Assembly (NCBI GenBank): GCA_016748015.1
Contig: JAAOMT010000031.1
Coordinates: 310,001 to 374,000 of the forward strand
Length of the DNA stretch: 64,000 bases
DNA from: Geosiphon pyriformis uo1
Lineage: Eukaryota; Fungi; Glomeromycota
Direction: 5' to 3'
Part shown: positions 26,539 through 38,650 of the stretch, piece by piece
Layout of the letters: each line of letters opens with the position of its first letter
Position numbering within the stretch: position 1 is the stretch's first letter
The notes under the pieces: model-generated
The model's database searches: none
Told to the model about the DNA's origin: nothing
What the model saw: the letters and a program-made list of their open reading frames with translations, nothing else
Position numbers and translations under genes: made by a program

Positions 26539-27852
26539 TCAATCAGCTTGAGTGGGATCCCAACCTATATTAAAGAAGAAATTAGCCTCACATCAAGAGC
26601 AAGAAACTTTCATTAATAAAAACTACATTTCATGCGTACCAGTCGTTAAATACTCATCCCATTGATTCATAATTTCGATATCTTCTTCCACAATTCGAAA
26701 ATCGTACACATTGGCATTCTCGATAATTCGTTCTTTTTTGGTACTTTTCGGTAGAACCACGTAACCACGTTGAAGACTCTAGAGCCTCGGTATTATGTTT
26801 AAGAAATTGAAAATCATAATCCAAACTTCATAGAAAACTCTATTACTTACCCAACGAATAAGAATTTGGGCTGGTGATTTGTTGTATTTTTTAGCTAATT
26901 CTCCCAATTTAAGATCATTCAGCTTTTTCCCCTTTGTCAGAGGCGAATAAGCCTCAATAACGATCCCTTCATCTTTGCAAAACGCCACAAGATCCTCACG
27001 ATTTAACCATGGATGAATCTGAAAGAAATAAAAAATTCCTATCATTTCAAAATACACACACTAAAACATCATTAACAAACCTCTATCTGATTCACAGCTG
27101 GTTTGATCTTCGGCTTGCTCGACAGCAATTCTTTCAAATGATGTACCCCGTAATTCGAAACCCCAATACTCCGCACCTTTCCCTGCTCTACTAATTCCTG
27201 TAAAGCTTGGTAACTTTCTTGTCGTTTCTTTTTGCCTGGAAGTGGTGAGTGGAGAAGTAGAAGATCAATGTATTCGGTGTGCAACTTTTGGAGAGATTCA
27301 TCCGCTGCTCGGAGGGTTTGTTCGTAGCCTTGATCCGAGTCCCAGATCTTGGTAGTAATAAAGATTTGATCGCGTGGAATTTCGCTGTGAACCAAAAAGT
27401 TAACTGGAGGTAAATTTAATTTATATTACTTTAAGATTATAGATTGATCTAACCTTTTAACAATTGCTCTACCAACGTCAGTTTCATTCCCATACAATGC
27501 CGCAGTATCAATATGCCTGTATCCCGCCTTCAAGATAAAAGTTAATCTTAATTCTGATAATATTTCTTCATTTTATGTGTTTCCTCATTATTATCAATTG
27601 ATTTGACATACTTCTAAAGCCCACAAAGTAGCATTTTCCGTTTCGTTTCCTTGCTTTGCTTTGTAAACACCTAAACCTTAAAGATCAAACAGAAAATTTT
27701 TGATTTCATTTAAATATTTTCGGTGAAATTGTGAACTCCTTTAACTTAATCGAAGGTCTTTTAAATGAATTGGCCAAGTCACCCAACAATGGTATCTGTC
27801 TTCCGTCGTTCAGAACGGCATAAGAATTAATGGATAAATCTTTTACACTCAT
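26539..27852 (-). CDS. Aldo-keto reductase (AKR5 / 2,5-DKG reductase-like), multi-exon
   Basis: [70 protein letters not shown]. Confidence 0.93.
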
Positions 27853-28075: not shown

Positions 28076-31000
28076 TTAATAAGCCTCTTTATCATCCTCC
28101 TCGCTCTGGGGGAAAGTATATTCACCTAATGTTATCACCTTCCTCATGATAATCACGCCATTTGGTCCGTTATCAAGCTCCCCTAATCGTTTTGATTCAT
28201 CTAATCCGCCCTCCTCAGAGTTCGAATATGATTGATCTGAGAATTGCCTAGCGGAATTAGAACAAAAAATTAATGCTTGTTGTCCAAACTTCAGCCTCAT
28301 TGCCTTTTTTAACAATTGCTTCGGATCACTGTTCTCGAAATCAATATGATCTGTTAAAAATTTGGCCCACGTTGGAGAAGAGAACTGGTGCAGAATATGT
28401 AGATTTGATTGATATAAAACAGTAGGAGGCAATAGGATAGGATTATGAGTCGTGACTACGAGCCTGATGTTGCGACGATACAAATTAGACTGTAAGTGTT
28501 GTAACGTGTTGGTAAGGGATGATTGAGATCTAAGAAACTAAATTAAAGAAAAAGAATAAATTAGAAATTTTAGTTTGATTATGTGGTAAAGGAGGCTTTA
28601 TTAAATCATGATTTACTTTGTCGGCTTCATCCAGCATCACTAATTTGGCTAACGACGTAGATTGTTGAGGTGATGTCCTGGTATAGATGCCAAGGACAAT
28701 ATCGAAAAGAACTGATGCCATTTCGGGGTGTAAAACAGGATCACTCAAATCAACAATTACCGCGACGCCTGGTTGAAATAAATCACCTAGGGACATAGAT
28801 ATGTGAGAATCTTCCTCGCTGATTCCCTTCTGCTTGAGAGATTGTTTGAGCCGCTCGGTAATAAAAGAATCAAGGCGACTTAAGTGGGATTTTAGGAATC
28901 CTTTCACTCTGAAGGAGACTGTACTTTGTAGAAGGCGACTGCAAAATTTGCTGTAATTAAAGTCATCTTGCATGGCATAGAAAAGATCGTCGGCGAGCTC
29001 CATGATTTGATCGCGGTCTTCAAAGTCACCTTTAATATCTAGCCATGCCTTGTTTTCGATAACAAAAGTTTATTCAAATGACCTAAAAAGGTTTTGCACG
29101 AATGAGAACCTAGAGATTGGCCCCTTTACCTTTACATAATCGACAGATAAATCAGTTTCCGAGAACAATAAAGGCCTCACTTCGCAAGCTTCAATACTAT
29201 CATATACTTTCTTCATATTTCGGTAGTTTGAGGGTGATACTAACACAATGACCTTTTCTGCAGATACCGGTTGTTTAAACTTCCCAACATATTGAGTTGA
29301 AGCTCCAAGGTATGCACTCATGCAAGGTAGAGTAAGAGAGCTTCTCTCGTATCGTAATATTAGGGCAGATAACCGGGAGATCAATTTACTAATGCGTGAA
29401 TTCTGTATGAGGCATCCTTCAAGGATAACTTGTTTCATTTTAACAATCCCAGAGCTCGGGAGCCCAATTATGATAATTGAAAATGGAAGGTCATAGTTCA
29501 AATAAACAGCATAATCGCCTGATGATTCCAGCGTACCGAGGCTGGTGTAGTTTTGAAATAATTCTGGATTGGCATCTAGCGTTACTTGACCGAACAAGGG
29601 ACCATCATCAATATCGTTTTCAGCCATCTTTACCAAAATCTTTTGCAAAACTTTACGTACGTCTTTATTGATGTTTTCAGAATTTTCGGAACTCCCGGAT
29701 TTGCTAAAATTCTGATATTGGGCTTTTGATGTCTGGCGTACCAGAGAACAAAATTCAAGGAATGTTCTTTCAGCCGCAGTCACAGGATGATTGAAAAATA
29801 AAGTAGATTGGGACTCTTCAGACATAGGATTAAAGGAGATCAAATCCAAATCTAATATTGGTTGCGCTTGTGGGGGTGGTGTGGTGGGGGAAGGCAACTG
29901 GATAAGCTGAGATTTTGCTGCAGCGCTGTTAGGTCCCGGGGATGTTGTTAAAGTTGGTTTTTGCTCTTGGGCTGATGTCGAATCACTTTGTACTTGAGAA
30001 GTAATTCTAATAGGTTGTGGCTTCGGGGGTGATTGAGAAGGTTGCAACTTTGAGATTACGTGAACGGCTTGTGGCTTCAAAACTGGCGCTTGAGTAGATA
30101 GCTCATGAAACTGTTTAGAAGCCGCTTTGGGTTGAATTTCTTTCATTAAAGAATCTGGCTGAGGTTCATTATTCGCCTCCAACCAAGGTATACGCACTTC
30201 CTTAGAATGTTGGATACCTATTGTGGCCCTTTGTTGCTCGATGAATACCTCTCGAGTTTTTATATCTTGATCTTGATTCATAACATCTTTGATTTGTGAT
30301 GTTACTAATGAGTTTAGGGGTGGTGTTGTGGCGCGTCTAATTGGTAGTGTTGGGATTGTCCAATTCAATTCAGCTTCAATTTTCGGATGTGATTCTTTTG
30401 AATTTATCAGTTGGCTATTTGGTTTGTCAGCAGTAGGTTTTGTTTGAGGGATTAATTTCCCACTAGCATCAATGAAATCAATGGATTCTCCCTCGTTTAA
30501 AAAAGGCTCATAAATAGCTTTTGAGGTGATCTCAGATTTAGATCTGATTTCATCTACAAATGGATGAATTTTTTGAGGCCCCTTGATGCCAACTTGATTC
30601 TTGAAAGTGACCAATGTATCCCCTGGCTTGCCTTCCGTATTCTTTAAATCAAATTCTTTACTTTGTTGGAGAAGTTCGAGTATTTTGAATTCAGGATATT
30701 TCCCACTCCAATTTAAATGGACGGCTAAGGCAGCGAGAGTAGCAGAACCTTCAAGCGCGATATATTTCTTAATATATTCCATGGGTGGTTGGTCTCCCGG
30801 AAAGGGCTTATATTCAACGAAAACATCGGTGACACATTGATACAAGAGAAAATCTGTATATGTCTCTAAAAGATCGGCTAATTTGATTCGTGGAGCAATA
30901 CCGGTACGTTTCAAGTAATCGCCAAGAACCGACATCCTAATCTGACTTTTATTTCTCAAATATGCCCGACAAGATCGTACAATTTCAATATCCGGAGAAC

Positions 31001-32597
31001 GAATCCAATAAACACCAGATTCAGACGTTATCTTGAACTCAGTCCACGGATTCAAGAATTCTTTAAGCGAGGCTGATGAAGGTAGCATATCCAATTTTTT
31101 CAGGTAATCCTGTAATTGTAACAATCGAGCTTTTCCAAATTCCATCATGTATTTACGAATACAGTGAATCAAATTATTATCACACTTCTTAAGTCGTATA
31201 TAAACTGTTTCCTCGATATGTGTTGTTTCGAAATCGGTTTTATCCCCGTTCAAATACTCATCGATTTTTTCTTTAGTTATATTATACTGTTGCTGATTCA
31301 ACAGCGTTTCAAGTTCATTTAATGTAGCAATTCCAAGTTTACAGACGCAATCACGAATCAGTTGAACAGTGTAAGGTTTAGTCATACGGTATTTTCCAAA
31401 GGGGTTGGTAATCGTTTTAGGTGAAATTAATTTTTGGGATGGCAAAAGGGATACATAATGAACATCTTCGTATTCTTTACATTCAAAGAGATCCGGACAA
31501 TTCATTAAAAAATCAACAAGTTGATGAGTGATTGTTCCCGGTTGTTCTCTCAGAAGAACAATCAATTCATTTATCGCGACACCTCTAGAACCACTATCAT
31601 TATTTTTTGATAAGTAATTTTTGACCAAGATTTCCGTCTGGTTCATACGGTTTTTAAGCATTGTACCATTTGTGGTAGTAGTTGAAGTTTTCTGTACGAG
31701 TCGGACACATGTTACGCCTCTCTCCAGGGAAACTTGAAATATATGCGAGTTTACATGCAAAAAATCCATTATTGGTGAGGTAATAACACTAAAACCTTTC
31801 TCTTTCAAGTGTTGCTCGAGCTCATGTACAGAATCAACACCATTTTTCTCGAGATATTGTCGAGCACATGTTACGGCTTTCGAGTCGGAATTGCCAACAG
31901 ATATATATTTATATAGTGTTTCTTTAGGTACATCAATCGACTCATTTTTGATTGAGGAAAAAGTTGTATTTTCTTCTTTTAATATTTTTGAAGTAGTGGA
32001 AACACCAGAAGTTCCTGTTTGTGAAAGACTTATTTGCTGAGTTTCTGGCCTTGATATTTGGGAGGAAGGAAGAGGTTGTTTTTCTTCTGTAGATTTTAAG
32101 GAGCCGCCGCCTTTAATGGAGTGTTCCATATTAGAATTTGTATATTCATCCAAATAAGAATCTCCAGTTTGAGATTCTTTGCCATTCGTGCTCTTTATTT
32201 CCCGTTCAAGAAATGTTATCCTTTGAGCAGGCATAAGAGGCAGGACGATGATTTTTGGAGGGTCGACCTTTTTGAGACTAATTAAAGCAGCCCCGTTAGG
32301 ACCTTCGGTGATCTCAAACGTCTCGGGACACTCGCTTAGCACGGCTTCCAGATATGCGGAGTCCACCTGAATAGATCGTGTTGCCAGCCATGTAGCTAAA
32401 GACTCTAGTGTAATTTTGAAATAGATATCATCGTCAAAATAACCTTTAACAGCTGCAATTATGGATTCTTTGGTCGTTTCCATTATCTTTGAAATTGGTA
32501 ACCCGAAATTTTTTTTTTGCTCACTCGTTTTGGGATGATCTGAAAAAATTATGTCTCGTGATATTCCATCATCAACACGCGTCAAACTTGTGGCCAT
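28076..32597 (-). CDS. Large protein: about seven tandem winged-helix (LOTUS/OST-HTH-like) repeats, Pro/Gln/Ser linker and C-terminal degenerate HerA/FtsK-like P-loop domain
   Basis: Exons 32597-29130, 29048-28617 and 28537-28076 splice in frame. The C-terminal domain has PFSIIIIGLPSSG, VLVSPSN, VRPLLF..DL, VIVDLSDP, VMLDEADKFL, RLVVTTHNP and HQFSSPTW. N-terminal repeats follow 'hxhxxLxxxL...hxxhLxxxxxxFxh'. Confidence 0.8.
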
Positions 32598-32640: not shown

Positions 32641-33797
32641 ATGGCTCATCAATCTTTTGATATGGATTCTCGTAAAGTCTTGGTATGTATGATTAATCCC
32701 TAGGTTACATCCTTAGAGTAAGAATGTTGATTTGAGGTTTAATGATATTTTTTTCAGTTAATTGGTTTAGGGAATTATACCCATCCAAACACGCGACATA
32801 GTATAGGAATGATGATGCTAGATTACCTCGTCGACCAATATAACCTGAAATGGATTTATAATGAAAAATGGCCAGGAAGTATGGCAAAAACTCAAATCAC
32901 AATCCAACCACAACCGATCAAATCTAAACCACGGCGTAAAAAGAAGGAAAAAAATGATGATAAAATGACGGAAGAGAATGATCAAATAAAAGAGGAGTGT
33001 GCTGTTGGTGATGCGACCCAACTTCTAGGCAAAAGTGAATCTGGATCTTTTGTCACTGCGTCCCCCAATCTAAATTTAGCAACATCAATACCAGTATCAT
33101 TACGGGTAACAAAGGTGAAAGAACAATGGAAACCACCAGACCCTATCACAATTGATTTAACTTTAATGAAACCACGATTGTTAATGAACGTAAGCGGGAA
33201 ATCTGTTAGCAAAGCTGGTAAATTATTGTTATGGGACTGATTAATTTAGTCTTCATATTTGTTAATGAAATCACTTTTTTTATTAATGATTCCTAAAAAA
33301 ATTTAGTCAAAGATCTTGGCTTCACAACTTCTAACATAATCGTAATCCATGATGACATGGGACGTGTTCCTGGAAAAATCAGTTTGAAAAATGGTGGAAG
33401 TGCAAAGTAAGTTTCAGTCAAAGTAACAACTATCTCACTCCTTTGATTTCCTAATTTATTGACTCCTTTTACCATGTGATCGTGAAGTGGGCATAACGGG
33501 ATCAAATCAGTAATAGAAAGGTTGGAAACTAATGTAAGTAATTATTCCATTTTATTTTTCTTGTACATAATTGACTTTGGATTAAAATAAGCTTCGATGA
33601 AAACATAGGAATTCAAACGACTTAGAATCGGAATTGGAAGGCCAGATCGAGAAATTGACGATAGATCACATGAAATCATCTCGGATTATGTGCTAGATCG
33701 TATCAGTGCCGCAGAAATGGAGGTATATACTAACGAAGTATTTCCTCGATGCAAAGAAGAATTGATAAAATTTGGTTTAAACGGTATGAAAGAGTAA
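32641..33797 (+). CDS. PTH1: Peptidyl-tRNA hydrolase (bacterial-type Pth, probably mitochondrial), five exons
   Basis: LIGLGNYTHPNTRHSIG, MKPRLLMNVSG, IIVIHDDM, GGSANGHNGIKS, RLRIGIGRP, DYVL. Confidence 0.93.
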
Positions 33798-33965: not shown

Positions 33966-35798
33966 TCATTGAGAATATTTTTTGTCTATTGACTCGTTGA
34001 TGGCCTCCCTCAATGCCTTTTCTTTTTTCGTCCATTCCACCATTGCTTCTCCGGTAGAAATAACTGCAGAATCAACAGCCTGAACAATTCTGTCTGTAAT
34101 TTCAATCATCATAGGTTGATAACGACTGTAAGCGTCAATGCTAATTTCCAATAATACGCGGACTTGCGTACTGAGAAACACGGAAACTGTGTCCAGGACT
34201 ACCGGGAAATGTGCATTTACAATATCTCGAACCGTGTGAAAAAGACTTAATGATTTTTCACACAATAATAAAACCCATGCCATGAGGTAGGGCATAATTA
34301 ATTGATAAAAAGTGTCCATAGCTGCGAGTATAGTGAAAAATAGGTCTTGAGATATTTTTAAAAAACGGACAAAATGTAGAGAACCAAATGTAATCAATGA
34401 CTTTACTATCCGGAACAATTTTAATAAGGCCACTAGAATAACTTTGCTGTAGAAAATCCTGAGGGCTGCGATAACAGGATGAAAGAGTGGTGCAAAAGTA
34501 GACCAGAAGGTGTGGAGCAATTTTAAAAAATTGATTCGAATTGAGTTATATGCTGCAGATGAAATTCGTTGAAGATTGGCATGGATTAAAGGTAGGGCCC
34601 TTATGCATGGAATGATAACTGTTTGTTGAAACCAAATGGAAATAGAGAGAAATTCAAGGTATGAATAATAAGCTTCCTCAGCCAAACAAAGAGCTGATCG
34701 TCGCGAATTCTCAGTAATGATTGGGATAATTTCCGAGATATATTTTTTCATTAGAATCAGTAGTGTTCCTGTGACAATGATGCTATGAAGTTTTCTCATG
34801 ACAAAACGTAAATTCTGATTTCTTAGGATTCCATATAGAACCCAGGAAGTTTCAGATAAAACTGCCACCACCAGTCGCAGGTATAAGAATTTACCCAAAC
34901 TTAGTCCTAAGACCTTAGCTTTGTGATATCCACGAATTGCTAATTTCTCCAAACAATTAAACAAAGGTTGAAGAGCAGAGTCCCAAATATGTATACTTGT
35001 TTGCAAAGTTATAATAAACAGATCTCTAAAGTCTTGTGCCAGATCTCTTGCAAGAAAACAAAGACAATGCCAAGCTATCTTTTGAAGATATATTGCTCTC
35101 GGAATAGCCCATTTCACAGGCTTAATAATCAATTTAATGAAGGTACGTGCTAAAAAAACGCCAAGTGGATATAAAATGTGAATCCATCCAGCTTCAAATA
35201 ATTCAATTCCACGATTCCAAGAAATTTTGATTAAATGTCGTACTTTTTCAAACGCCACAATAAAGTAAAGCCAAATATTTTTAATGACCGGCCATGCATG
35301 AATTCGAGCCCAGTTTGCGAAACCTACAGTAGCCTGTATAAGTGGTTTTTGAATGTATAAACGCCAAATGAATGGTGCATTAGCAATAACTTTGGAAATT
35401 GTTGCTGCGCTCCATTTTATTCCATGCCCCAGCAAGTAGAGACCAGACTCTGCACTATCAAGTGAATAGAAAACAAATAACTCAAAAGTATCCCAAGCAA
35501 GTCGTAAAGATAAATAAACAACTGCTAAAGGGAGAAAAGGAATATATAAAGCGAGGTTTTGTTCCTGCGAGAGATTTAGAATGGGTTGCTGTTCTGGAGC
35601 TTTCCGGATCGTCTTTCGTTTAAAGAACTCTTCATGTAGCTGTCGCCAGTTCTTGTAATAGCTGATGGCCACATAAAGATAAAGAAACACAAATAATAGT
35701 AGGAAGATAATCCAGAAAGATATTCCTTCAACCAAAAGAGTTTCGGAGGGTTTAGAAAATGAGGGATCTGATGAAATAGTGTTAAAGGGAATTTCCAT
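33966..35798 (-). CDS. Hypothetical 610-aa hydrophobic/amphipathic all-helical membrane protein
   Basis: Long intronless ORF with gene-like base composition, an N-terminal TM helix and many aromatic amphipathic helices. Confidence 0.7.
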   Translation of the reverse strand: MEIPFNTISSDPSFSKPSETLLVEGISFWIIFLLLFVFLYLYVAISYYKNWRQLHEEFFKRKTIRKAPEQQPILNLSQEQNLALYIPFLPLAVVYLSLRLAWDTFELFVFYSLDSAESGLYLLGHGIKWSAATISKVIANAPFIWRLYIQKPLIQATVGFANWARIHAWPVIKNIWLYFIVAFEKVRHLIKISWNRGIELFEAGWIHILYPLGVFLARTFIKLIIKPVKWAIPRAIYLQKIAWHCLCFLARDLAQDFRDLFIITLQTSIHIWDSALQPLFNCLEKLAIRGYHKAKVLGLSLGKFLYLRLVVAVLSETSWVLYGILRNQNLRFVMRKLHSIIVTGTLLILMKKYISEIIPIITENSRRSALCLAEEAYYSYLEFLSISIWFQQTVIIPCIRALPLIHANLQRISSAAYNSIRINFLKLLHTFWSTFAPLFHPVIAALRIFYSKVILVALLKLFRIVKSLITFGSLHFVRFLKISQDLFFTILAAMDTFYQLIMPYLMAWVLLLCEKSLSLFHTVRDIVNAHFPVVLDTVSVFLSTQVRVLLEISIDAYSRYQPMMIEITDRIVQAVDSAVISTGEAMVEWTKKEKALREAINESIDKKYSQ

Positions 35799-36239
35799 AT
35801 TCTTTAATTATTGAAGATATGAAGTTTACAAATTTCTAAAGCGGCTAATTAAAACTTTGTACTGAAAATTCATCTTTAAAGTCTTGGAAGGTCTTGCTTT
35901 ATACACTTGGCCAAGTTGCTGATGATCCAATCTTTGCTATATTCGTGGTGAAATTTGCCGACAAGAATTTCCATAATGGACTAACAAAAAAAGAAATAGA
36001 ATTTATAATTATGATGAGATATAAGAATTAATTTAGAATTGTTTTACTGTGAAATAATATAATTAGAAATAGACAAGATACGTAAAGAAACGTTTATATA
36101 TCTTATTGGATCAAAAGAAATAAGTTAATTCGGGTTATCAAAAATTAAAAAAGGCTTTATAATGCCAAATTCAAATAGGATATCTATAATGTTTGTCTAC
36201 TATTAAGGTCAAATAACGTGTTATTGTAATAAGATTATG

Positions 36240-38650
36240 CAAAACTTGTATAGTTAATTATCAATAATTTTAAAATTAATAATAATCTTAATAAGTCTTC
36301 TTTGCATTTTTATAACTTTGAAAATATGTTTGGCCATTTAATTATTAATATACAAGCAATACCAAAACCCAAGTACTTTTCCTTTTTGTTTAAAATAAAA
36401 ATCTTAATACTTTAAACCTTTTTCTTAATTCATAATCTGTATTTGTTCTTTAATTTAGTTTTTGTAACAATAAAAACATATTATTTGCTCTTAATATATT
36501 ACTTGACAATATTGTTTTGTTTAACTTAAAAAAATATAATATTATTAACAGTTTTGCCATTACAATTATACTTGAATCTACTTTTATTATTAGATTTTTT
36601 ATTAGATTTTAATTAAAAATTATTAAAGACTTAAATATATTTAAATTTTTTTAACTTTATTATTTGTTCTGTAAAGTTAATAAAACAGTATTTTAACTTA
36701 ACAATTATAATTTTAATATTTTTAGCATTGTTAAAAAAAGTTTTTAATTAAAATACTAAACATAATAGCTTGAAAAATCTGTATTTATTTTTTTTTACCA
36801 AAATACTGATTAATTAATAGAAATTTGTATTTTAATATATATATAAATAAGTTATATTTTAATAATTTAACCAAATTTTGGAAAAATTTTGGAAAAATTA
36901 TATTTTAAAACTATTTAATTAAAATATTTATATATAATATATTTAAACAAAATAAGTATAATTCAAAATAAATTAATTTTATTAAGTTTTTTCAAAAAAT
37001 TTTTAAATTAAAAACAAATAATTCTATAGTATTACTTGAGTAAAAAAAACCAATCCAAAACTATTGAAAAAATGAAATTAATACATAATAACATAAAATA
37101 ATATGAAATAATGTAAAATAATATAAAATAACTTAGAATAACATAAAATAATATAAAATAGCATAAAATAATCAGTCATAACATAAAATAATTAATTATA
37201 ACAAAAAGAAACAAAGCAATAATAGAAATAACAAAAAATAGCTAATAATAATAAGCAATTAAAAGCAATCTTATAAAATTAAAGAATATGTATAAAAACA
37301 AGTAGTTTTAACAGATAAAAAAAAGACAAACAAAAAACAAAAATTAATTTCTTCTTATTATTTTATTTTTTTATCTATTATTTATTTTTTAATAAAGTAT
37401 TGTTAAAATTAAACCAAAAATACCTAATATTAACAACTTATTATCTATAGACTTTAACTAATTATTGTTTTTTATCTTTATTTTAGACCAAATACAATTA
37501 GCATAAACATTTTTGGAACTTTAATGACTAAAACAATTACTTTTAATTATGATAATTAATAAAATACTAATTTTTTTTTATTTTTTTAATTTTTTTATTT
37601 TCTTTTTATCTTATAAAGTAACAACATTGGAAATTAACTGTTTAAGAATAGACTTTATAATAACTTAGTAAAAAAAAAGCTTTTTCTAGTATTAGATATT
37701 AACTTCATCTTATTAATTTATTAAAGAACAAAAAAACAATATTAAACTCTAGTAATTATACTTGACTAGTTTAGAGAAAAAAGCTTATATCTATAAACAT
37801 AAATTGCTAGAAAATATATCTTTGTCTTTTATAACCAAAGAACTTTATAAATAAATTTATATATATTAACAATTTTTAGAAATTAGTAAAACATAGCATA
37901 TATTTGTAAATTCAAAAAACTCTATAGTTTTTATATTTAAAATTTTGAACATAAAATATTACTATTATTCTTTACCAAATTTATTTATAACAACAGTTAA
38001 TCTAAGCATATATAATAGAATTTTAATTATAAAACAAGTTTTTTTATTAAAAAATACCAAAAAATTTAAAAAATTATAGATTATATATTTATTAATAAAG
38101 TATAAAAAAAGTTTTAATGTTTTTTTTATAATATTAGGTTTTATAATATAAACAATATTTTTTTAATTAAAACAAACTATTTGAAAACTATTAAATTAGC
38201 CAAATTTAAATTAATAAACTTAATTATAATTTTTTATAAGTTAATAAGCTATAATTTAATTAAAACAATTTTGTCAAATTTAAAAAATTAATTGTATAGT
38301 TATTTTAAAAGTATTTATTTAATTTTTTTTTAAAAAATTGGCAAAAATAATAAATAATAAAAAAATTTTATATTATTCAATTGGATTTTTTGACAAAAAA
38401 AACTGGTTTTAGTATTTTTGATATTATATTTTATAAATTATTTAGAATTTTATTATTGTTATTTAAGTTAAAGTTAAATTTTTTAACATAATATTTTTTT
38501 ATATTTTTAATATTAATTTTGATTATTTTATTATTAATAATACTGCATTTGTTTTTTAATCAAAAATTTTTTTTTAAAAAAACACAATTATTACTATTAA
38601 AGTTTTGAACAATAAATGTTAAACAATAAATTATAAAAAATTAAATGTTT
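36240..38650 (-). mobile_element. AT-rich decayed repeats, including a minus-strand LINE endonuclease fragment near 36240-36530
   Basis: The reverse strand reads KQNNIVK*...VFIVTKTKL, matching KQTDIIR*H...SIVTETKL in the 54 kb LINE ORF2. A degenerate 10-bp tandem repeat lies at about 37085-37190. Confidence 0.55.

Follow-up and report, generated by a model that had tools for sequence, protein, structure and literature searches.

Seven LOTUS-like winged helices and a degenerate HerA-clade P-loop domain in one protein of Glomeromycota

The gene G9A89_004248 of Geosiphon pyriformis (Glomeromycota, order Archaeosporales), publicly annotated as a hypothetical protein, occupies positions 28076..32597 on the minus strand of the window, i.e. 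the whole stretch of 64,000 nucleotides of contig JAAOMT010000031.1 analysed here. Its product of 1453 residues very probably unites, in one polypeptide, seven LOTUS-like winged helices and a P-loop domain of the HerA clade that is dead as an ATPase. Both components are already known separately, namely tandem LOTUS arrays (MARF1, TDRD5/7, MIP-1/2) and HerA ATPases. In the literature and family libraries that we searched, neither a LOTUS-HerA fusion nor the divergent repeat family was found described, nor was any pseudo-ATPase of the HerA clade from a eukaryote, and the literature on fungal HerA pseudo-ATPases returned noise only; the architecture, which a preliminary description of the window had not recognised from any characterised protein, thus indeed appears undescribed. 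The Glomeromycota are an ancient group of fungi living in symbiosis with plants; their hyphae are coenocytic and multinucleate, and only a small number of the genes specific to the lineage are understood. What is known of HerA-clade ATPases comes mainly from DNA repair and anti-phage defence in prokaryotes.

Results

The fusion is directly readable in the Geosiphon DNA. A single open frame of 1156 codons, exon 1 (32597..29130, ending ..VDYVK), covers the whole repeat array, the linker and also the initial ~147 residues of the P-loop domain. Because the fusion is one open frame, the objection that the two parts might belong to separate transcripts does not apply at the DNA level.

The repeat array comprises seven units of 67-76 residues that align with a common hydrophobic pattern, and all 14 repeat motifs quoted in the preliminary description were located, between residues 62 and 639. 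R1 (residues 40-112; 32262..32480) is an acidic winged-helix unit, separated from the other repeats by a disordered, low-complexity spacer of 120 residues (residues 113-233; 31899..32261). R2 (residues 234-306; 31680..31898), R3 (residues 316-391; 31425..31652) and R4 (residues 402-473; 31179..31394) follow, and then R5 (residues 472-538; 30984..31184), which adjoins R4 and R6 without a linker, R6 (residues 536-603; 30789..30992) and R7 (residues 600-675; 30573..30800). The array gives way to a linker (residues 676-1009; 29571..30572) with a P/S/T/Q content of 37%, in agreement with the disordered P/Q/S linker that had been proposed; like the repeats, it lies on the minus strand.

That the seven units are true repeats is borne out by leave-one-position-out hidden Markov models (HMMs), in which a model built from the six other positions of Geosiphon and Ambispora was used to score the left-out Geosiphon unit. 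The left-out units reached 19.1-30.8 bits (E 5e-8 to 1e-11), while the best of 1000 shuffles per unit did not exceed 11.3 bits. Furthermore, each Geosiphon unit finds its best match in the unit of the same position, both in Paraglomus (7/7) and in Glomus (7/7). Hence, the sequence comparison indicates that the seven-unit array is older than the split of Paraglomerales, Archaeosporales and Glomerales and has never been homogenised since.

We modelled the repeats with AlphaFold2. Folded alone, with an alignment of 52 repeat units from seven proteins (A5) as input, R4 adopts the order H-E-H-H-E-E (H8-20, E22-24, H25-34, H41-50, E55-60, E63-68) with a predicted local distance difference test score (pLDDT) of 82. 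A model of R2-R7 from eight orthologues (pLDDT 81) shows the winged-helix topology alpha1-beta1-alpha2-alpha3-beta2-beta3 six times, with R4-R7 abutting without linkers (pLDDT 85-93). In this array model, the C-terminal helix of extended LOTUS domains is missing, as beta3 passes directly into the next alpha1 (R4-R7) or into coil. Binding of Vasa-type helicases depends on this extension helix and is confined to animals, and minimal LOTUS domains do not bind such helicases (PMC7498356). The DEAD-box helicase partner previously suggested for the protein is thus unlikely, since the units have no such helix.

The subtype of the winged helices was assessed by profile-profile comparison with hhalign. 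LOTUS reference profiles were made from bacterial OST-HTH domains of two phyla scoring above the Pfam cut-off (set A, 22 sequences; set B, 14 sequences), and control winged-helix profiles were constructed in the same way. A5 matched set A with a probability of 89.6% (P 1.9e-6, 50 columns), set B with 66% (P 5.5e-5, 63 columns) and the pooled sets with 92.9% (P 3.6e-7, 63 columns, alpha1 to beta3). Among the controls, SelB wing-3 reached 56% (P 1.1e-4, 31 columns), followed by MarR (8.4%, P 0.004, 28 columns), ArsR (0.9%, P 0.065, 24 columns) and HARE-HTH (0.5%, P 0.11, 27 columns); the LOTUS profiles themselves gave at most 2% with each of the four control families. The observed score of 34.7 compares with 8.2+-1.7 (maximum 13.5) for 200 column-permuted versions of A5 and with 9.6 for the reversed profile. 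The two profiles correspond in the hydrophobic core of beta1-alpha2, in alpha3 and in the hairpin.

Other leads for the repeats were followed as well. No ESM-Atlas feature scored above 0.83; HARE-HTH, one of these leads, was rejected on the hhalign result above, and an Egalitarian winged helix (ESM-Atlas 0.79, one Pfam match at 0.0036) is a tentative lead. Pfam and NCBIfam gave nothing above noise on the exons and the whole protein, and phmmer of exon 1 against solved structures gave no match. Matches of the repeat profile to a designed repeat protein and an EF-hand among solved structures were rejected as noise. In the Geosiphon genome as a whole, the best match to Pfam OST-HTH (G000:C610:264358-264465, inside an open frame of 298 residues) scores 20.3 bits, below the gathering score of 23.8 bits for PF12872. 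Since even the best genome-wide match is sub-threshold, Geosiphon seems to have few canonical LOTUS domains or none.

The P-loop domain begins within exon 1 (first part, residues 1010-1156; 29130..29570) and continues through the two following exons. In PADLOC, the Geosiphon domain matches mad8 at 6.6e-10 and a HerA model at 0.004; standalone fungal relatives reach 1e-12 to 1e-17 with mad8 and also hit many HerA models, the best at 1e-8. The family profile finds solved defence HerA structures, 8xau (1.3e-8) first and then 8yho, 8j4u, TdpA 8wet and 8wiv. ESM features connect the domain to fungal 'AAA+ ATPase' clusters (0.98) and to DUF87/HerA (0.96); Pfam gave sub-threshold matches only. The homologous core starts ~25 residues before the P-loop, after the P/S/T/Q-rich linker, and the P-loop is also the starting point of the mad8 profile.

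Walker A of the Geosiphon protein is the degenerate GLPSSGIVK (residues 1045-1053; 29439..29465), where standalone relatives have GSQGSGKSH, while Walker B is retained (VMLDEADK, residues 1293-1300; LDEADK, 1295-1300). Indeed, none of the nine fused Glomeromycota proteins retains the Lys-Ser of Walker A, the QRH Arg or the TQEPT Gln, whereas the eight standalone fungal proteins all have G-x-Q-G-x-G-K-S, LDEAHK, QRH and TQEPT, with Walker A reading G(S/V/F)QG(S/A/G/V)GKS and the sensor QRH...TQ(E/D)PT. Fused forms of Walker A are GLPSSGIV in Geosiphon, GTPNSGVD in Ambispora, GLPNSGVS/N in Glomus and Rhizophagus and GDRGSGME in Paraglomus; fused sensors read LYR...THNP (Geosiphon), LYQ...THDPT (Ambispora) and PQY...TYEPT (Rhizophagus). 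The Asp-Glu of Walker B is kept in most fused proteins and changed to LEEAEN in Paraglomus. Because all nine fused proteins are without Lys-Ser, Arg and Gln, their sequences support a pseudo-ATPase, with a loss of these residues that is ancestral to Glomeromycota. The HerA/FtsK-like pseudo-ATPase of the preliminary description thus holds, both for its clade and for the dead Walker A. Between Geosiphon and Ambispora, this dead domain is better conserved than any other part (51% identity, compared with 38-45% for the array).

Proteins on five further contigs resemble the fungal HerA-like domain at 22-26% identity over nearly the full extent of that domain. Two of these contigs (L005, L006) are short and come from metagenome-assembled genomes of Ferrimicrobium and Sphingomonadales; the others are L009-L011. 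These proteins may be true bacterial relatives, and then a possible transfer source, or may stem from mis-binned fungal contigs.

An HMMER scan with the array profile covered 1.84 billion representatives of 50%-identity clusters. It recovered eight clusters and no member outside Glomeromycota; Entrophospora sp. SA101 supplies four of them, the others being from Geosiphon, Ambispora leptoticha, Glomus cerebriforme and Paraglomus occultum. A word search with residues 1-1150 as query was swamped by low-complexity words and returned the protein itself only; with the domains taken apart, it also brought up Rhizophagus irregularis, R. clarus and Funneliformis geosporum. The fusion is also present in Paraglomus, Glomus, R. 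clarus, R. irregularis, Funneliformis and A. leptoticha, the latter having repeat 7, linker and ATPase domain within one gene model. The survey proposed for Mucoromycota as a whole therefore confirms that the array architecture recurs beyond Geosiphon and at the same time limits it to Glomeromycota. As the gene is conserved from Paraglomus to Rhizophagus with its seven modules in order, it appears to have been constrained since the ancestor of those lineages.

Some public models of the orthologues call for comment. In A. gerdemannii (contig CAJVPL010003322.1, L001:247-4465), the orthologue is annotated as two genes, an array of 681 residues and an ATPase of 634 residues. Removal of a 79-nt GT..AG stretch (L001 2243-2321) would bring both frames together in phase, for which reason the public model probably misses an intron. 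Glomus cerebriforme RIA88320.1 and a Joint Genome Institute (JGI) model (P0026) run into hydrophobic nonsense after Walker B (..LDEAHK). Since this nonsense starts exactly at the position of Geosiphon intron 2, the 3' ends of both models look mis-annotated, with the intron read through. Entrophospora sp. SA101 has several array paralogues (P0020-P0025), one of which, P0024 (1097 residues), carries an unrelated N-terminal region of ~330 residues and a coiled-coil-like tail in place of the ATPase domain. Names such as '2020_t:CDS:2' were considered as a sign of two coding sequences per transcript; this was rejected, the naming being used for all genes of those assemblies.

In Geosiphon itself, a search of the own genome detected no paralogue of either the array or the ATPase domain, so that the gene is single-copy. 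An active paralogue as ATPase partner, considered as a candidate, was rejected accordingly.

The full-length protein analysed is that of the public record G9A89_004248, with splice junctions read directly from the sequence; the exon-by-exon reading of 28076-32597 is identical to it. Minus-strand open frames of the region run from 32597 to 29070, from 29003 to 28530 and from 28483 to 28076. Intron 1 (29129..29049, 81 nt, GT..AG) contains an in-frame stop, and its junction is conserved in the orthologues. Exon 2 (29048..28617, residues 1157-1300) terminates in the ..LDEADK of Walker B (28617-28634), and after intron 2 (28616..28538, 79 nt) exon 3 (28537..28076, residues 1301-1453 and the stop) encodes the sensor region that matches PADLOC mad8. 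Intron 2 is missing from one public read contig of 267 nt, which spans exons 2 and 3 with exactly 79 nt removed (joint 28537/28617, ends CT..AC on the plus strand) and which weakly suggests that the gene is transcribed; coverage in the single read run is limited to 28379-28724 and 32651-32682. The first 38 annotated residues (32483-32597) have no counterpart in any orthologue and translation may in fact begin at Met39 (32483), whose equivalent is the first residue of every orthologue.

On the same strand, two open frames downstream of the gene (26779-27395) resemble, by eye, exons of an aldo-keto reductase. Upstream, an open frame of 610 residues with long hydrophobic stretches (33966-35798) probably encodes a multi-pass membrane protein, and beyond it lies an extremely AT-rich stretch (GC 12-20% at 36000-37000).

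Discussion

The array-ATPase fusion invites the view that the protein displays RNA-binding LOTUS modules on a HerA-like platform, and a number of observations speak against it. PF12872 gave no match at E<=10 for the whole protein, for any of the 52 repeats or, in a six-frame scan of the genome, for this locus, so that the Pfam assignment expected at the outset was not recovered. In the hhalign alignment, the repeats have neither the LOTUS 'DGW' that precedes beta1 nor the 'P-F-D-P-x-x-Y-G' loop that connects alpha2 with alpha3; gaps or unrelated residues stand opposite these hallmark positions, and the loop of the repeats is ~6 residues shorter. Structure searches with a single repeat lead to generic DNA-binding winged helices: Foldseek against the PDB yields ArsR, MarR, MecI and Z-alpha at E of at least 0.025 and TM 0.6-0.77/0.78, VIA-align gives Z 8.7-10.2 with 120 chains at Z of at least 8, and the fold neighbours in the ESM Atlas are ArsR, MarR and BlaI clusters and one cluster of NYN proteins. 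LOTUS is missing from the top 50; at the size of a single repeat, however, these three tools are unable to separate LOTUS from other winged-helix subtypes. Searches with the whole array match mostly protein or DNA scaffolds, namely TFIIIC tauB (2.2e-6), UFL1 (1.6e-5) and Dcc1 (8.6e-4), with the RNA binders SelB C-terminus and RNA-bound Egalitarian also among the matches, all of them local (TM-scores of at most 0.22, and 0.11-0.22 for TFIIIC tauB, UFL1 and Dcc1). The array is near neutral in Geosiphon (net +3) with an acidic R1 (net -7), the array of Paraglomus having a net charge of +16. The fungal family seems, from where its homologous core starts, to be without the N-terminal barrel of HerA. 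Finally, evidence for expression comes down to the single 267-nt contig and is weak, because the contig has a depth of 2 and the kind of run is uncertain.

The LOTUS/OST-HTH identity is backed by the winged-helix topology and by the LOTUS-specific profile match (93%, P=3.6e-7), but not by the Pfam model or the hallmark motifs. Since PF12872 fails everywhere and both motifs are missing, we read the repeats, on their profiles, as a divergent sister family of minimal LOTUS domains rather than as ordinary members.

Comparison with known systems places the protein between several families. The animal multi-LOTUS proteins, MARF1 with 6-8 tandem minimal LOTUS domains, TDRD5/TDRD7 and C. elegans MIP-1/2, likewise consist of tandem winged helices of ~70-80 residues and disordered regions, and they are multivalent organisers of RNA and ribonucleoproteins (RNPs) (PMC7498356, PMC6168497, PMC8331183). 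The Geosiphon units resemble minimal LOTUS in having no extension helix, but they are below Pfam detection and without the 'P-F-D-P-x-x-Y-G' loop; moreover, the protein has no NYN, RRM or Tudor domain, carries the dead HerA-clade domain instead and occurs in one fungal phylum. Bacterial NYN-LOTUS proteins (OST-HTH, PF12872) provide the best profile-profile match of the repeats (93%, 63 columns), yet they have single or paired LOTUS domains beside a nuclease, with the hallmark motifs present and a P-loop domain absent. With defence HerA (Sir2-HerA, DUF4297-HerA, TdpA; PDB 8xau, 8yho, 8j4u, 8wet, 8wiv) and PADLOC mad8 of MADS, the C-terminal domain has in common the RecA-type core, Walker B hhhDEAHK and the sensor segment that follows (family profile E 1e-8 against the PDB, 1e-12 to 1e-17 against mad8). 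Defence HerA proteins, however, are active hexameric motors with an effector partner, whereas the fused fungal proteins have lost the Walker A Lys-Ser/Thr and the Arg, show no evident HAS barrel (the core starts ~25 residues before the P-loop, as in mad8) and have no operon context. The nearest relatives of the C-terminal domain are standalone HerA-like ATPases of Ascomycota, Basidiomycota and chytrids (25-29% identity, E to 2e-30; ESM 0.98), which differ by canonical GSQGSGKSHT and QRH/TQEPT, a length of 400-700 residues and the lack of a winged-helix array. The SelB C-terminus, Egalitarian, TFIIIC tauB, UFL1 and RPC82 also use several consecutive winged helices as a platform, but they do not superpose overall (TM <=0.22), belong to different sequence families and have no P-loop domain. 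The winged helices of SelB and Egalitarian grip structured RNA.

It is quite possible that the protein acts as an oligomeric scaffold with many RNA- or RNP-binding modules. The dead ATPase domain would turn over no nucleotide and would have been retained for assembly or docking, probably as a ring if it behaves like HerA. Flexible tethers of ~330 residues would display the LOTUS-like modules, 42 of them if the ring is a hexamer, and the modules would bind RNA or RNA-associated proteins multivalently. Minimal LOTUS domains bind G-rich and G-quadruplex (G4) RNA, and tandem arrays have been proposed to raise avidity (PMC7498356). The protein might then be an organising hub of RNP assemblies in coenocytic hyphae, as MARF1, TDRD5/7 and MIP-1/2 are in animals. 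Its most specific form, in which a nucleotide-dead hexameric HerA hub with 42 LOTUS-like RNA-binding modules would nucleate RNA granules or bodies for the surveillance of transposon or virus RNA in multinucleate hyphae, as an invention of the arbuscular-mycorrhizal lineage and an independent fungal counterpart of animal germ-granule LOTUS scaffolds, built on a domesticated prokaryotic-type defence ATPase, we consider rather unlikely.

A serious rival, given the nearly neutral array and the acidic R1, and one that we hold for a somewhat doubtful but realistic option, is an adaptor between proteins, in which the winged helices would dock proteins as in UFL1, TFIIIC tauB, cullins, ESCRT-II or Dcc1, the dead ATPase domain would be an extra module for interaction or oligomerisation and the ligand would not be a nucleic acid. 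The best array-level Foldseek matches are of just this kind, and the identity that each repeat has kept since the ancestor of Glomeromycota is expected if the partners differ. The low TM-scores of those matches, however, mean that the domain type alone is shared, and the sole family-specific profile signal is LOTUS, followed by SelB, both of them RNA binders. Alternatively, the units could be classical winged-helix DNA readers and the HerA-derived domain the relic of a DNA translocase, making the protein a DNA- or chromatin-binding factor. HerA/FtsK relatives do act on DNA, and in structure searches single units are closest to the DNA binders MarR, ArsR, MecI, Fur and Z-alpha (Z 9-10, TM 0.6-0.78), but a Z of ~10 is common to >100 unrelated winged helices, the profile probabilities for ArsR, MarR and HARE-HTH are about 8% or less, the Geosiphon array is not basic and the motor is dead; we consider this quite unlikely.

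That the P-loop domain might still work as an NTPase or nucleotide sensor by way of a non-canonical P-loop, e.g. with the Lys two positions downstream (GIVK) as a substitute, would fit its strong conservation and the Walker B Asp-Glu kept in most fused members. The displaced Lys, however, is peculiar to Geosiphon, and the loop and the positions next to it are free of Lys in Ambispora, Glomus, Rhizophagus, Funneliformis and Paraglomus; as Paraglomus has LEEAEN for Walker B and the QRH Arg and TQEPT Gln are also lost, such residual activity is very improbable. We give even less credence to an annotation artefact or a decaying gene, that is, two unrelated genes read together or a pseudogene, although A. 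gerdemannii is annotated as two genes and several of the public models are cut short or extend into introns. In Geosiphon, 1156 stop-free codons cover both halves, the A. gerdemannii frames are united by the 79-nt GT..AG intron, the models of A. leptoticha, Paraglomus, Rhizophagus and Funneliformis are fused, and Geosiphon and Ambispora are 38-51% identical over array and ATPase domain with all seven units kept; an artefact is thus extremely improbable.

In summary, our analysis points to a gene that databases label as hypothetical and that appears to have been constrained since the ancestor of the Glomeromycota lineages. The repeats would extend the LOTUS superfamily to a divergent fungal branch missed by current models, and the C-terminal domain would be a HerA-clade ATPase retained as a pseudo-enzyme in a eukaryote. 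If the dead ring is indeed an assembly hub, the protein would clearly exemplify the conversion of a motor into a scaffold, and the orthologue in Rhizophagus irregularis makes the gene testable in a model species.

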